64,000 nt of DNA from sequence record MT713136.1. The stretch is one strand, 5' to 3'. Shown piece after piece: positions 12,639 through 18,565 of the stretch. The position numbers and the translations under genes were made by a program. A model generated the notes under the pieces. That model was not told the DNA's origin and made no database searches. It saw only the letters and a program-made list of their open reading frames with translations. Numbering within the stretch: the stretch's first letter is position 1; each line of letters starts with the position of its first letter.

Positions 12639-14321
12639 TTAGGCACCCAGAACACGTACACGACGGTAGAAGGAGTTCTTACCGAAGATTGCAGCACCCG
12701 GCATACCGGAAGTGATCTTGGAGAAGCCTTTGTTCTTGGAACCGTCAGCGAACGGGTGCAGTTTAACACCGTAACGGGTCTTGAAGCCAAGAATGGTAGC
12801 GAAGGACTTAGGATCCACACCACGCAGCGGGCTCAACGGGATGTATGGGCAGTAGTACAGACCCGCATCCAGTTCGGAGCTACCCTTGAAGCCTACAGTG
12901 AAGTAATCTTCAACAGCGTACTGGTCGATGAAGACACGATACTTACCAGCCAGAACACCAGCGAACTGAGATACGGAGGTATCAGTGTTCAGCTTGGTAG
13001 TACCAGCAGCAGCCGGAGAAACCAGTTGGTCGGTGGAACCGAGCATTACGGCAACGTTACGGGAACAGATTACGAAGTTACCGTTACCACGACCGGTTTG
13101 ACGACCGATTTCAGCAGCTTCCTTATCGATTTGGGTAACCAGAGCCTTGGCGCTCTCACCTTGCCAACGAGCACCACGAACGTCGTTCGGGTCGGCAAAG
13201 TTGAAGACACCAGCTTGACCACCATGTTGGTTAGTCCAACCGGTCTTACCAATTTGAGCGGTAGCGTTGATCCACAGGATCATTTCACGGTTGATTTCCA
13301 GCATGATTTCGTTAGCCAGAATGCTGGACAGTTCGCTGTCTGCATCCAGACCGTGAACGTTACGCAGGTCCTGAGCCAGTTCGATAGAGTACTGAGCTTT
13401 CAGTTGACGAGCCTTAGCTTCAACTACTTGCTTATCAATACGGAAACTCATTTCAGGCCACGGGTTATTGCTGGAACCATTAAAGTTCTCTTGCAGTTCC
13501 GCCATGGAGGTAGCCATACCTTCACCGATTTCAACCGCGATCTTGTCGTGGATCAGTTTCAGGTAACCAGCGGTTTTAGCGTCAGCAGCAGTACCAGCAG
13601 TATAAGCGGTAACGAACTGAACAACCTTAGTACCGGAGTTGGAATAAGCGTCTACTTCTTCATCCAGTTGGAAGCGAGCCAGATCACCGATTGCATAGGT
13701 TCCGTCTTTATCAAAAGCAGGAATCAGCGGGGCAGTGGCACCACGACCAGAGAAGCTGGAATCAGGTGCATATTGCGGGTGGAAAGCTTCGCGAGCTTGA
13801 GCATCCAGCGCATCAGTACCATAGATGGCACGAAGGGTGAATACCTGACCAGCGGAAGAGGTCATCGGCTGAACACCACAGATATCAAAGGCAATCAGGT
13901 TGCTGATAGCACGACGAGCCAGACCCATAACAGCCGGACCGACGTTGGTGATGTTACCGGAAGCTTCACCAGAGGCGATCTTAACAGCATCATAACCGTG
14001 GTCACCGACGATGTTAGCTTCGGTTAGCATGGTTTCCATCTCTTCACCGGTCAGTTCGCGACCTTCTGCCAGAGCAGCGGCTTGAGCTTCGTTCAGCATC
14101 TTTTTGGCTTCTGCCAGTTGAGCTTTACGACCTTGAACGTCAACCATGGAGTCGATTACGGTTTGGTCGGTATATGCAGCACCGTCGTTACTCTTGATGT
14201 CTTCATATTGGTTTTCCATCAGACGAGCGACGATATCCTTGCGCTTCATGGTAGCAATTTCCGGCATACCTTCTTTTTCAAGCAGCGGTTTCCACTTAGC
14301 GATAATAGCGGTCTTAGACAT
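12639..14321 (-). CDS. 23: major capsid protein gp23
   Basis: KWKPLLE, GVQPM, EMSFRIDKQVVEAK.RQLKAQYSIELAQDLR.VHGLDAD, GFKTRYG. Confidence 0.98.
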   Translation of the reverse strand: MSKTAIIAKWKPLLEKEGMPEIATMKRKDIVARLMENQYEDIKSNDGAAYTDQTVIDSMVDVQGRKAQLAEAKKMLNEAQAAALAEGRELTGEEMETMLTEANIVGDHGYDAVKIASGEASGNITNVGPAVMGLARRAISNLIAFDICGVQPMTSSAGQVFTLRAIYGTDALDAQAREAFHPQYAPDSSFSGRGATAPLIPAFDKDGTYAIGDLARFQLDEEVDAYSNSGTKVVQFVTAYTAGTAADAKTAGYLKLIHDKIAVEIGEGMATSMAELQENFNGSSNNPWPEMSFRIDKQVVEAKARQLKAQYSIELAQDLRNVHGLDADSELSSILANEIMLEINREMILWINATAQIGKTGWTNQHGGQAGVFNFADPNDVRGARWQGESAKALVTQIDKEAAEIGRQTGRGNGNFVICSRNVAVMLGSTDQLVSPAAAGTTKLNTDTSVSQFAGVLAGKYRVFIDQYAVEDYFTVGFKGSSELDAGLYYCPYIPLSPLRGVDPKSFATILGFKTRYGVKLHPFADGSKNKGFSKITSGMPGAAIFGKNSFYRRVRVLGA

Positions 14322-14359
14322 TTTTGTTTTCCTTTTTGGATTTGAAATTTAATTTTCGG

Positions 14360-14479
14360 GGAGAAGAACCATTTCTTCTTTCCCACTACTTTACAAGGTC
14401 CCAACTCATCTTCATTTATATACCTGATCATTTCAGCTTTTTGTTCTTCCGACGCAAACCACACTTTATATTTAAACAT
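14360..14479 (-). pseudogene. hypothetical protein, probably 3'-truncated at a junction
   Basis: MFKYKVWFASEEQ...KKKWFF then reads out of frame over the gp23 start. Confidence 0.4.
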
Positions 14480-14486
14480 ATACACC

Positions 14487-14780
14487 TCAAAATTCTAAAA
14501 ATCGATCAACCAATTTACCATTTTCATCACGAATACCACCCAACCCTTTATTGATCAGATGGATATCACCAGTATACTTAACAACTCTGTCATAGTCTCG
14601 GTTATGACGGTTGTTCAACCACATTTCATAGTACCCCTGTTCATGCTTATGAACATAGTAGAACCAACATTTCTTCTCACCTAGCTTAAACACACGACCC
14701 AATAACAGGGTAGAACCGTTGTCCATACCGTGGACGATATAATCACCGACCACAAGCTCATTACCAAACATATCAACCAT
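14487..14780 (-). CDS. hypothetical protein
   Basis: GAGG SD. Confidence 0.7.
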   Translation of the reverse strand: MVDMFGNELVVGDYIVHGMDNGSTLLLGRVFKLGEKKCWFYYVHKHEQGYYEMWLNNRHNRDYDRVVKYTGDIHLINKGLGGIRDENGKLVDRFLEF

Positions 14781-14834: not shown

Positions 14835-15788
14835 TTATTCACGAGCATTAGTCAACAGAAGTTTTGACTTAATCTTAGTGATTTGGTTCTTGCGACCACG
14901 CCAGTGTTTACCACAGTGGGTACACTTATACTGCTTGAACTTACTGACTTCTGTATACGCAAATCCAGCATCTTCAAACTCATGATTTCCACATACGCAA
15001 GTGAATTTGTCTGAATCTGTATAAAGAGAGAAGTTCGGAAGACGATCCGACCATGGAGCCAATTTAACATATAGTTCTTGGAGAGATACGATATCATCAA
15101 TATTATATTCTTCCATCTCTTTCCAAGCTTCGATATTACCAGCCAAGCATTCTTTCCACAATTCAAAACCGGGGAATTGAGTATGTTTAGATTTCTTGGT
15201 TTCTGTGCATAGCTTATCGGTCATATATTCCAGCTTGTTGGAAGTAAAACCAAACGTGCGTTTTGCGATCTCAAGAGTATCAATATGCTTCACGGTAGAG
15301 AACGGTTTCATACCATGAACGATCATACGACTGCGAATTTTTGGAATATCAAACCGACGACCATTCTGATGAAGAACGATATCAGCTTCGTCAAGAAGCT
15401 CCCATAGAACTTTCAGCATTTCTGAATCATCTTCGATATTTGGTGCATTTCGCTGGTCCATATAAATGATTTCATCACTGTCAAACCATTTAGCAGCAAA
15501 ACTAAGCATATACCAATCGGACTCGATCATATTCAGACCAACGTTGGTCTTAAACAAGCGCCATACATGAGCCATAATCGGAGCGGTTTCAATATCCAGA
15601 ACTAGAACACGGGGACCGGTTTTGATATCGTCCACAATATTGTTCTCTTCCATGAAACGCTCGTAATAATAGTTTACGGAAGATTTAGAAATACCAAGTT
15701 CTTTCGCAATTGCTCGCGAACCCATACCCTTGTTCTCTTTCATCTCAACAATCTGTGAGATTACGGTTTCGTAATTACTGATAGCCAT
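14835..15788 (-). CDS. HTH + DnaQ/RNase H-like 3'-5' exonuclease + C-terminal zinc ribbon
   Basis: SRAIAKELGISKSSV HTH; LDIETAP, HQNGRRFD, YNIDD; CVCG...CTHCG. Confidence 0.8.
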   Translation of the reverse strand: MAISNYETVISQIVEMKENKGMGSRAIAKELGISKSSVNYYYERFMEENNIVDDIKTGPRVLVLDIETAPIMAHVWRLFKTNVGLNMIESDWYMLSFAAKWFDSDEIIYMDQRNAPNIEDDSEMLKVLWELLDEADIVLHQNGRRFDIPKIRSRMIVHGMKPFSTVKHIDTLEIAKRTFGFTSNKLEYMTDKLCTETKKSKHTQFPGFELWKECLAGNIEAWKEMEEYNIDDIVSLQELYVKLAPWSDRLPNFSLYTDSDKFTCVCGNHEFEDAGFAYTEVSKFKQYKCTHCGKHWRGRKNQITKIKSKLLLTNARE

Positions 15789-15893: not shown

Positions 15894-17087
15894 TTAGAAC
15901 TCGTGAGTTACGTCTGAGATTACTTCATAAGTCCAAGTACGAAGTTTCGCATTGTCGTAATCAGTTGGGATAGCAACGACGTGGGCTGGGTTGATCTTAA
16001 CCATCACAACCCGGTCATTCTCACAAGATGAATAGTATGGGATGTAGTGACGAGCAGCAGCATGAAGACCCGCAGCACAAGTATTGTTTCGGTCGTCATC
16101 TACCTCAAATGGCTCGACTCGTGGCTTAGAACCAATACTATTATCAAACGTGTGGGTGCGGATATCCTTATAATCCTCGGTAACGCGCTTGTACGCTAGG
16201 AAATGACCATCGTTGGTGATTTTGATGTCACTATGAGTCAGGAAGTCAAAAAGCTCGTATACAGCCGCACGGCGCGGATTCTGTAACAGGTTTTTCAGGA
16301 AGGTAACCATATACTCAAACTCTTCCCCGGACGCCCACATATCAATGATTCTTCGGGTCATCGATGTATCAAGAACAATATCACGATAGTAGAGTGTGTC
16401 GCCTTCAATCCGAATATCACCAGAAGAATAGGTTTTGATTGCTTCTTTGATAGAAATCAGGTTTACCGCACCGACCACATCATTGTCGCGGATCAGGAGT
16501 TGAAACGCATCTTCAAACCGTGGGTGGGCTCGGTCTGCAACGTATGGGGTTCCATCAATGAAGCAGTTAATAAAGTCATAACTTGCATTCCAAGATACCA
16601 CGGGGGTATGAACCGGTTCGATTATTTCCTTCAAATGGATTGTTTTATCCGACTTCTTCTGAATTCCCTTATAGCGACGAACTACATCACCTACTGTTGA
16701 ACGAGGGATACCAGTTTGACGGGAAATTTCGTTTTGGCTGATTCCGCGATTATGAAGTCGGATAATTTTATCATCACGACTTTCTTCGACTTTATTTTCA
16801 GAATAATCATGTACATCAAATTGCAAATCGATTTTATTAGTCCCAACCATCAATTTAATCAATTCTTTAATTGTAAGGGCTTCCCATCCTTCAAGTACAT
16901 CGAGATCGCCAAGATCTATATCAAGTTCTTCCTCGATATACATAACAAGTTCTACAACATCGAGATCGTCTAGGTTGTAATATGCAAAAGTTCTGTTGTT
17001 GTCAAGTTCTTTTACTTTATAACCGGTTACATCGTAAATACCGCTACGAATCAATGCTTCAAGTTTTTCAATATGGATAGTTTCCAT
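15894..17087 (-). CDS. rIIB: rIIB protein with N-terminal ACP-like domain and HTH
   Basis: C-terminus LYDF-like/GHFLAYKRV/CAAGLH/KLRTWTYEV typical of rIIB; downstream of rIIA. Confidence 0.88.
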   Translation of the reverse strand: METIHIEKLEALIRSGIYDVTGYKVKELDNNRTFAYYNLDDLDVVELVMYIEEELDIDLGDLDVLEGWEALTIKELIKLMVGTNKIDLQFDVHDYSENKVEESRDDKIIRLHNRGISQNEISRQTGIPRSTVGDVVRRYKGIQKKSDKTIHLKEIIEPVHTPVVSWNASYDFINCFIDGTPYVADRAHPRFEDAFQLLIRDNDVVGAVNLISIKEAIKTYSSGDIRIEGDTLYYRDIVLDTSMTRRIIDMWASGEEFEYMVTFLKNLLQNPRRAAVYELFDFLTHSDIKITNDGHFLAYKRVTEDYKDIRTHTFDNSIGSKPRVEPFEVDDDRNNTCAAGLHAAARHYIPYYSSCENDRVVMVKINPAHVVAIPTDYDNAKLRTWTYEVISDVTHEF

Positions 17088-17111
17088 TTTATTTCCTCAT
17101 TAAAAAGGGGC

Positions 17112-18565
17112 TTACACCCCTTTGTAGTTTTCCATAATAAGTTTAGTTGCAAGTTCGAACTCTTCGTTTTTTACACAACTATAATTTTTCTTCAACCTAA
17201 GAATCGCACATTCCATGGGGAATTGCTTTTTCATTTCGTCATAAAAATTATGATATACATCATACATACTCTGACGATGGTTTTCAACAACATCGGTATA
17301 AACTTGATATTCATGTTCAGTCAAATATTCTTGAGCATGAACATAAATATTACCAAGATCATGATCCCAATCACCGGATTCCGAGATACCAAAATAGTCC
17401 TTCATTTCCCGAGTAATTTCCATATCGACCCTTGGCTTATCAGACCTATTGATATTCCAACCAATTTTATTACCCTTTAAATTGTTATTGAGATATTCAA
17501 CAAGTTTACCTTTGATCATTTCCTTTGTAATGAGAGTCAAATTCTCATTCATGTTAGCCCGTCGTTCAAGGGTTTTCGGAAATGCATACAACGTTGTATC
17601 AAACATCTCAGATAACCAACTTTGAAGTCCATCTGTAACTTCATGACCATCAACAACAATATATTCGCCAGAACGAAGACCATACAGCCCACTAAGCTCG
17701 TGTACATCCTTGGCAAGGAAATTGCCAGTACTGCGATACCCTTTATTATAATAATGCGAGTTGTCTGGTTTGTAACGTGGAGTTTTAGCCCTATTCCGCT
17801 GTGCTTCTAAACGACGTTGGCGCTTCTCTTCTGCTTCTTTCTCTTCAATTTCTTGAACGTGCTTATCATACAACTTCTCTACATGAAAAACATCGATATC
17901 GTCTTTGTGGTAACGCTTTGCAATCTGGATAAAGAGATTTCGAGTTACATTCTTGAAAGGTTTGCGAGAATAAGGGTAATCGCTCATAACAACAACCCGT
18001 TCATTAGGAATGATACCATACTTCATAAGAAGCTTGATCCTTACCTTCCACTTACCATCCATATTAGACAGAAGGATTGGGAATGGATATCGCTTATTCT
18101 TTACTGACGGCATGAAATAGTCATTAAACTCGATTTTACGAGACGACCCGTAATATCTTGCACGTTCAAGATTCCAAACATTTCGCACCGCATTACTAAA
18201 TGTATCGATATAAACGAAATTTTTGTTTTTATAACTGTAATCCACACAGAAATCTTTAAACAAAGACCATTCTTTCGAAGATGTAATACTTTCGTAGAAG
18301 AAGCGCCAATCTTGAAGAGACTTGCCGTTATGGTCAATAATCTTTGATACTTTGTTAAAGATATGCTCACCAAAATCCATAGACAAAATAGCATGAATTT
18401 TACTTCGAGCATCCTTTCCATGTTCAGAAACCTTTTTATTGACTTCATCAATAACTTGGTCCGATTGGGATTTAAAATAAGAATTCAGTGTATTCAGTGT
18501 GTGTTTATCAAGACTCAATTCTTCCCGGTTCGGGAGAGGATTGAGAGACCCAACAGGATATTTTG
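17112..18565 (-). pseudogene. rIIA: rIIA lacking the N-terminal ATPase region
   Basis: Frame extends to YPVGSLNPLPNREELSLD (T4 FPMGSLDIAPSREALSLD), preceded by a stop. Confidence 0.8.

Follow-up and report, generated by a model that had tools for sequence, protein, structure and literature searches.

Bacteriophage rIIA and rIIB rank among genetics' most famous genes. In the T-even phages, rII genetics comprises the rapid-lysis phenotype and protection from Rex-type exclusion (PMC10312443, PMC13716836), and the biochemical mechanism of the system is still called unclear in recent work (PMC10312443). Here we analyze the rIIB gene in a stretch of 64,000 nucleotides, referred to below as the window, from sequence record MT713136.1. 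The source is the T4-like Aeromonas phage AP1 (Straboviridae, Emmerichvirinae, Ceceduovirus), to which the region is 100% identical. The gene occupies window positions 15894..17087 on the minus strand as a single unbroken open reading frame (ORF) of 397 codons plus stop, and its sequence agrees at 100% identity with the rIIB annotated in AP1. Like the rIIB proteins of T4 and T6 (PF26926, PHROG 609), its product has a helix-turn-helix (HTH) ahead of the same core, residues 164-397, and belongs to an rIIA-rIIB pair. Unlike them, it begins with a domain that resembles an acyl carrier protein (ACP). The order of its modules is ACP-like domain, linker, HTH, linker and rIIB core.

The closest solved relatives of this domain are AcpP of Escherichia coli and the ACP of Vibrio harveyi, with which it shares a predicted four-helix fold at target-normalized template modelling scores of 0.69-0.79, an acidic isoelectric point (pI) and an L-V-M triad flanked by Asp and Glu. 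In AcpP, the central L-V-M of helix II and the acidic residues around it mediate recognition by SpoT, MukB and fatty-acid-synthesis enzymes (PMC3340395). The rIIB domain is unlike AcpP in that an aspartate, Asp41, stands in place of the attachment serine, in that it is fused in cis to a 300-residue phage protein, and in that its model has an extra two-strand clasp joining the N and C termini. The closest functional precedent is the mitochondrial ACP of Plasmodium falciparum, an ACP fold that lacks phosphopantetheine and serves as a pure binding subunit of Isd11-Nfs1 (PMC8547962). That protein, unlike the rIIB domain, is eukaryotic, organellar and free-standing, and its partner has been demonstrated; the rIIB domain is one of several in a viral protein. 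A second, purely functional likeness is to the acidic mimics with which phages block host machinery, such as gp5.9 of phage T7, which acts on RecBCD and MukBEF (PMC7617805): here, too, a small acidic viral module could occupy a basic site on a host complex. MukBEF is thus a documented phage target, and it is also an AcpP-binding complex. Unlike the rIIB domain, gp5.9 is a DNA mimic of unrelated fold, and binding by the rIIB domain is putative.

The original prediction, made from the DNA alone, had placed an ACP mimic in the first ~82 residues of rIIB. Its position is borne out, although its end is not: residues 1-82 correspond to 16842-17087, and the predicted fold continues to about residue 90, so that the domain spans residues 1-90 (16818..17087, minus strand). 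It contains 21 acidic and 8 basic residues, with a pI of 4.1. Residues 1-82 match the Pfam PP-binding family (PF00550) with 28.6 bits and an E-value of 1.7e-6; when the full protein is scanned, the match still reaches 24.5 bits, and the gathering cut-off is 20.8 bits. PHROG families annotated as acyl carrier protein likewise match the rIIB N-terminus. When PDB sequences were searched with phmmer, chains of E. coli AcpP (4ihf_G, 3ejb_A, 1l0h and 1acp) were recovered at E-values of ~1e-5. In these alignments D40-D41-L42-D43 falls on the D-S-L-D of AcpP and L47-V48-M49 on its L-V-M. From D40 to D61, i.e., over helix II and its C-terminal flank, 13 of 22 residues are identical; over the whole domain, identity to AcpP is about 34%. 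Polyubiquitin, which came out on top of the PDB sequence search, was dismissed as an artefact; its score adds up nine repeat matches that are sub-threshold one by one, with individual E-values >2000.

Broader searches agree with this assignment. An exhaustive phmmer search of 1.84 billion representatives with residues 1-95 yielded 19 matches at E <= 1e-3. Ten of these are proteins of 80-99 residues, eight of which Pfam calls PP-binding, six of them at E-values from 8e-9 to 1e-12. Word-indexed protein searches with the same residues, either as a region or as a free piece, returned the protein's own cluster or nothing. The domain itself is already visible to databases, and the precomputed Pfam list shows PF00550 on the rIIB of phage ZPAH1; a literature search found no paper linking rIIB with a carrier-protein domain. 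What is new is an rIIB with an added, degenerate carrier-protein module.

Structure prediction points to the same fold. The AlphaFold model of residues 1-95 has a predicted local distance difference test (pLDDT) score of 87 and a predicted template modelling score (pTM) of 0.77, and adopts the four-helix topology of ACPs, with helices at residues 6-21, 41-55, 60-64 and 73-82 (pLDDT 87-94). A short pair of strands, 2-5 and 86-89, clasps the two ends of the domain. The alignment behind this model consisted of the ten small homologues from the exhaustive search, true ACPs among them. As a control, the full-length protein was modelled from an alignment of 64 rIIB homologues that contained no ACP at all, and the N-terminal fold was the same as in the domain run, with a pLDDT of ~90. 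That is, the predicted models show the right-turn four-helix bundle and the long loop between helices I and II that are typical of the PP-binding fold.

When the domain model was compared with the PDB using Foldseek, all of the top 50 matches were carrier proteins or carrier domains, with E. coli AcpP first. For free-standing carriers, the target-normalized template modelling scores were 0.67-0.79, and identities reached 34% (AcpP). Foldseek with the full-length model returned almost only ACPs. The best match in BFVD was the independently modelled rIIB of phage 65.2, which superposes on 82 columns with a root-mean-square deviation of 1.9; free carrier proteins of phages came next. As modelled, then, residues 1-90 form a folded member of the ACP (PP-binding) class, with gammaproteobacterial type II ACPs as closest solved relatives. 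By fold and profile these residues belong to the PP-binding superfamily, without its defining attachment serine, and we therefore call the domain ACP-like and not ACP.

The serine site is where the domain departs most plainly from a carrier protein. Members of the PP-binding family have a conserved serine in a D-S-L motif at the start of helix II; the local motif of rIIB is L39-D40-D41-L42-D43. Codon 41 (16965..16967, minus strand; plus-strand 'atc') reads GAT, or Asp, and aligns with the phosphopantetheine-attachment serine of E. coli AcpP. Since the serine is replaced, and residue 41 has no hydroxyl, phosphopantetheinylation at this residue is impossible. The substitution and the resulting inability to be acylated there had both been anticipated correctly.

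To place this site in the context of the family, we compared 65 rIIB representatives, i.e., the query and 64 clusters. Ten of them carry the domain according to a purpose-built domain hidden Markov model (HMM). Across these ten lineages the residues at the serine site are D, D, S, G, G, G, E, E, E and E, so that Ser is absent from nine. Asp is found in the window's rIIB and in P0001, a cluster of CC2-like phages; Gly in three phage 65-type clusters; Glu in ZPAH1, P0008, P0010 and P0011; and Ser in the metagenomic relative P0002 alone. A further protein, P0009 (551 residues), places D-E-L-D at the site in a MAFFT alignment; neither Pfam nor the domain HMM supports it, and it was not counted as a carrier of the domain. 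The Ser-to-Asp change thus stood up in the AP1/CC2-like lineage and not as a conserved feature: judging from these sequences, the trait that the lineages share is that the serine is nearly always gone, whereas Asp is confined to the CC2-like lineage and thus no design feature. In the relatives, the site looks like one drifting at an unconstrained position, and not like the remnant of a maintained carrier function.

P0002 does raise the question of whether the domain is a true carrier in some lineages, with an ancestral rIIB role that involved an acyl or other thioester cargo. This protein has D-S-L-D, passes the Pfam PP-binding cut-off with 24.3 bits, and might be phosphopantetheinylated. Nevertheless, we consider the idea highly improbable. 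Ser occurs in only one of the ten lineages, and its codon in P0002, AGT, is one step from the GGT-type Gly codons and two from the Asp codons of relatives, a pattern that resembles drift. The sister lineage of P0002, to which it is 71% identical overall, has Asp. Finally, no gene for a phosphopantetheinyl transferase or for acyl handling lies beside rIIB in any locus viewed.

A domain with a drifting active site might also be an evolutionary relic, that is, a captured carrier-protein gene that was fused to rIIB and is decaying, with the role of a spacer at most. The single-base steps among D, S, G and E (GAT, GGT-type, AGT) would agree with decay, as would the low identity outside helix II. 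Against this, the domain is intact in 21 of 21 phage records and also in metagenomic relatives whose identity has fallen to 22-46%, a compact fold is predicted for it with confidence, its surface acidic residues are invariant, and its ratio of non-synonymous to synonymous substitution rates (dN/dS) is 0.11-0.22. A relic thus seems to us quite improbable.

The conserved residues of the domain are concentrated in helix II (residues 40-56; 16920..16970, minus strand), which by its alignment with AcpP and its conservation in the ten lineages resembles an acidic and hydrophobic recognition helix. L42, D43, E46, L47 and E52 are invariant in the ten lineages, D40 and M49 are kept in nine, position 53 is acidic in all, and D56 is present in eight. 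Outside helix II, only the hydrophobic pattern persists across them. The L-V-M triad and its flanking acidic residues, i.e., the elements of the AcpP recognition surface (PMC3340395), are thus retained, in line with the original prediction of a preserved acidic docking face.

Based on these features, we tentatively propose, with somewhat less than even confidence, that the domain is a cofactor-independent docking module for a host protein that binds AcpP via helix II. The domain would then not be a carrier; instead, rIIB would sit on a host AcpP-binding protein with no need for the phosphopantetheine arm. The build of the protein lends some support to this proposal, as it is modular, with low-pLDDT linkers, a shifted position of the domain in P0010 and P0011, and HTH repeats in its place elsewhere.

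Several considerations weigh against a host-docking role. In every ACP, helix II is conserved best and is the part that HMMs pick up, and so its 'conservation' is in part a selection effect of homology detection, together with fold stability. The NCBIfam equivalogs of ACP (TIGR00517, NF002148-NF002151) match the domain at E-values of ~3e-6, but the scores are far under the cut-offs for AcpP equivalogs (27.0 bits against 70.45, and 26.5 against 106); the domain is therefore a relative of AcpP, not an orthologue. Outside helix II it diverges fast: relative to P0002 it is 46% identical, against 86-87% for the HTH and core, and relative to phage 65 the identities are 39% for the domain, 79% for the HTH and 65% for the core; overall, 39-46% stands against 79-86% and 65-87%. 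By these comparisons, the ACP-like domain is the fastest-changing folded part of rIIB. In favour of the proposal, its pairwise dN/dS is nevertheless 0.11 with respect to CC2 and 0.22 with respect to AS-szw, which indicates purifying selection at the sequence level, although these ratios derive from few changes, namely 4 and 12 non-synonymous ones, respectively. Lastly, the case for a host partner is built from the predicted fold and from conservation, and the domain might just as well have another phage protein, or the basic HTH of rIIB itself, as its partner.

The rapid divergence could alternatively reflect a shield or variable face, i.e., an N-terminal domain that evolves fast and thereby alters or masks rIIB to host defence sensors. 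T6 rIIB alone triggers a gasdermin system from Lysobacter, and escape mutants map to rIIB (PMC10312443). Besides being the fastest-diverging folded part of the protein, the domain has been exchanged by recombination in AS-szw, with a synonymous divergence (dS) of 0.26 in the 5' third of the gene compared with 0 in the core. However, the pairwise dN/dS is well under 1, the acidic residues of helix II that are exposed the most do not vary, which is the opposite of a diversifying surface, and no Aeromonas sensor of rIIB is known. We regard this explanation as improbable.

The AS-szw gene (L009 3001-4194) is a mosaic in its own right. Its 5' third, which encodes the ACP-like domain, linker and HTH, differs from the window by the dS given above, and the DNA of its core is identical. 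Recombination inside rIIB, close to a domain boundary, is implied by this pattern, and with it an exchange of N-terminal modules.

If the domain does dock on a host protein, the candidate partners can be narrowed down to those that accept apo-ACP. SpoT, which the original prediction had proposed, is reported not to bind apo-ACP (PMC3896788), and we have set it aside. By contrast, apo-ACP inhibits the glycerol-3-phosphate acyltransferase PlsB, and growth stops (PMC3896788), and the ATPase of MukB responds alike to apo- and holo-AcpP, both of which stimulate it (PMC8602292). By analogy, MukB and PlsB are plausible targets. The favoured ones would be such apo-ACP acceptors, i.e., PlsB at the inner membrane or the neck of MukB. 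The effect would probably be local, in that rIIB would be placed at one machine, or one site would be blocked, with no bulk titration of AcpP partners.

This last point bears on the original idea of a decoy that competes for the partners of ACP. In terms of abundance, AcpP ranks among the top soluble proteins of the cell. An early phage protein that is tied to rIIB in a one-to-one ratio is thus implausible as a mass-action titrator, and a docking or targeting role, which fits better, is preferred. The rII proteins are classically membrane-associated, and a membrane-side target would fit this association. It would also agree with the finding that T6 rIIB is toxic when expressed in E. coli (PMC10312443), and a MukB-type target would fit the neighbouring HTH. 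The evidence here favours neither type over the other.

The strongest rival to docking on a host protein is that the domain works inside the rII system, where it would bind rIIA, the rIIB core or its own HTH, perhaps as an autoinhibitory or DNA-mimicking lid, and the host partners of AcpP would be irrelevant. A domain of pI 4.1 beside an HTH of pI 10.5 on a flexible linker would suit such a role. In addition, HTH modules fill the N-terminal region of rIIB in other phages, such that this accessory region seems tied to DNA binding, and rIIA always adjoins rIIB. The residues conserved in the domain are, however, exactly those of the partner-recognition helix of AcpP. P0010 and P0011, moreover, have the domain but no HTH_SB-type module between it and the core, and the full-length model shows no confident packing between domains (pTM 0.55). 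On balance, we judge action within the rII system to be rather unlikely. If the domain acts only within the rII pair, the result is a modest improvement in annotation.

Docking on a host protein, which we continue to favour tentatively, would have wider consequences. A lineage-specific fusion acts as a natural 'Rosetta stone', by which the contacts of rIIB are narrowed to cofactor-independent helix II binders of AcpP. If rIIB does dock on MukBEF or PlsB, this would be the first molecular contact point of the rII system, whose mechanism has been elusive since the 1950s.

The distribution of the domain was surveyed with a full-length search, the exhaustive representative search, tblastn on phage records and one pattern scan of IMG/VR. 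With the whole protein as tblastn query, 2827 phage records have an rIIB match, which starts inside the ACP-like domain in 21. Ceceduovirus accounts for 15 of these and phage 65 for three, and the others are avDM6, ZPAH1 and Aswh_1; every one is an Aeromonas phage of Emmerichvirinae with a genome of roughly 225-255 kb. In the other 2806 records, T-even types among them, no rIIB match begins in the domain. The rIIBs of T-even type align from residue ~107, i.e., over HTH and core, and many others only from ~165-180, i.e., over the core. The survey of homologs turned up the domain in 10 of 65 rIIB representatives, and the Asp itself in two of those ten lineages.

In each of the 21 phage records, which are independent, the ACP-like N-terminus and rIIB form one annotated coding sequence (CDS) within the same synteny. 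That relatives, too, have a single CDS here, in an unchanged gene order, implies that the rIIB N-terminus is not a junction product, in agreement with the original prediction of an in-frame fusion. The converse outcome that it had considered, namely relatives in which the N-terminus is a separate or artefactual ORF, was not encountered; relatives show one CDS instead, and the apparent exception, P0007, is merely a truncated record. This protein of 305 residues (L011 1-1080) was evaluated as a naturally domain-less rIIB and rejected, as its contig starts inside the gene. The frame upstream still encodes the domain's C-terminal half and has one stop near the contig end.

The position and the identity of the N-terminal modules vary among relatives. 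P0010 and P0011 have the ACP-like segment further in, at residues ~58-123, preceded by another N-terminal stretch. The N-termini of phiAS5 and phage 31 were considered as hidden, divergent ACP-like domains, and this was rejected when HTH repeats were found. Unlike AP1, both of these Aeromonas phages, which are also T4-like, have extra HTH-like repeats, one or two, at the rIIB N-terminus (L015 1141-1500 in phiAS5, L016 27-203 in phage 31). From these comparisons, the N-terminal region of rIIB behaves as a variable cassette of accessory modules.

Outside rIIB, the nearest relatives of the domain are free phage ACP-like proteins, with 33-38% identity, comparable to the ~34% of AcpP. Free phage carriers (PHROG 5934 and 4154, and the BFVD entries 'Carrier domain-containing protein' of pf16, Motura and phiCbK) have the same fold and a similar size. 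Unlike the rIIB domain, they are separate small ORFs unlinked to rII, and most keep the serine of D-S-L-D. Among the nearest free-standing relatives examined, no free ACP-like ORF is linked to rII genes.

Some of these free proteins also lack the serine, and have Glu (P0067), Ala (P0074 and P0076) or Asp (P0075) in its place. P0067 and P0074 are encoded on phage-like contigs, one with ThyX, HNH and an M15 peptidase, the other with NAMPT and many small ORFs, and neither adjoins rII genes. The IMG/VR scan added six more free ORFs, five with D-S-L-D and one with D-D-L-D, the latter on a viral contig of 436 kb. Going by sequence, serine-less ACP-like proteins are a recurring minority among the carrier-like ORFs of phages. 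Three such free ORFs, of 88-94 residues, lie at L006 5001-5267 (Glu), L014 4001-4285 (Ala) and, approximately, L024 2411-2692 (Asp).

Serine-less ACP-like ORFs thus recur in unrelated large phages. The rIIB domain would be a viral addition to the few ACP folds that work without phosphopantetheine. A more general proposal is that serine-less ACP modules are phage effectors that imitate host AcpP, fused to rIIB in the Aeromonas Emmerichvirinae and free in other large phages, and that the module of rIIB docks on the apo-ACP-tolerant MukBEF neck or on PlsB. In this generality, we consider the proposal unlikely.

Behind the domain, rIIB continues with linker 1 (residues 91-103; 16779..16817, minus strand), which is predicted to be flexible, with a pLDDT <50 at 92-99, and is poorly conserved in relatives. 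The HTH module (residues 104-145; 16653..16778, minus strand) has a pI of 10.5. It matches HTH_23 of Pfam with 25.0 bits, just above the cut-off of 24.6, and HTH_SB at an E-value of 3.3e-9, where its 36.8 bits remain under the cut-off of 43. The full-length AlphaFold model places three helices in this module, at residues 104-113, 118-125 and 129-139. A second low-confidence linker, at residues 147-157, precedes the core (residues 164-397; 15897..16598, minus strand). The core is recognized by PHROG 609 and related families, and by PF26926, which is precomputed on homologues. It is modelled as a mixed alpha/beta fold with pLDDT values mostly of 80-97, and Foldseek with the full-length model found no PDB fold neighbour for it, as all meaningful matches fell on the ACP-like domain. 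With pLDDT values <50 in the linkers, the full-length model shows the ACP-like domain flexibly tethered ahead of the basic HTH and the rIIB core.

Profiles identify the gene as rIIB. PHROG 609, 'RIIB lysis inhibitor', matches residues 58-397 at an E-value of 2.4e-106, and PF26926 (Phage_T4_rIIB) is precomputed on all 64 rIIB homologues. In addition, 14 other Ceceduovirus records are 96-99.8% identical to the region, and every one of them annotates the ORF as rIIB. A Shine-Dalgarno sequence, GAGGA (17094..17098, minus strand), can be read from the DNA 6 bases ahead of the rIIB ATG. As originally described, the frame has its own ribosome-binding site and runs through to the HTH and rIIB core.

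The stop codon of rIIA lies 24 bases upstream of the rIIB ATG. The rIIA gene (17112..18518, minus strand), directly upstream of rIIB, is an ORF of 468 residues that matches PHROG 612 at an E-value of 3.4e-36. Likewise, rIIA precedes rIIB in AS-zj, CC2, AS-szw, ZPAH1 and metagenomic contigs, and relatives share the order topoisomerase, three small genes, rIIA, rIIB and an exonuclease-like gene. In the window, the gene after rIIB (14835-15788, minus strand) encodes an N-terminal HTH and an RNase_H_2/exonuclease domain, and belongs to PHROG 403, 'DNA polymerase exonuclease subunit'. In every Emmerichvirinae relative and metagenomic contig examined, this gene has kept its place beside rIIB.

The rIIA of AP1, with its 468 residues, is shorter than those of AS-zj, CC2 and AS-szw, which have 744. 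Its homology covers only residues 244-744 of the relatives' rIIA, i.e., there is a single shortening at the 5' end, and the missing 5' part was not found elsewhere in the window. After the shortened end comes a baseplate wedge gene on the opposite strand. The AP1 record has 254 kb, compared with ~230 kb in relatives, and is therefore probably rearranged or misassembled. Downstream, the block of early genes after rIIB is followed almost directly by the gene for the major capsid protein (12639-14780, minus strand); in AS-zj and CC2, about ten further small early genes take its place, and its placement is the second departure of AP1 from the collinear order of its relatives.

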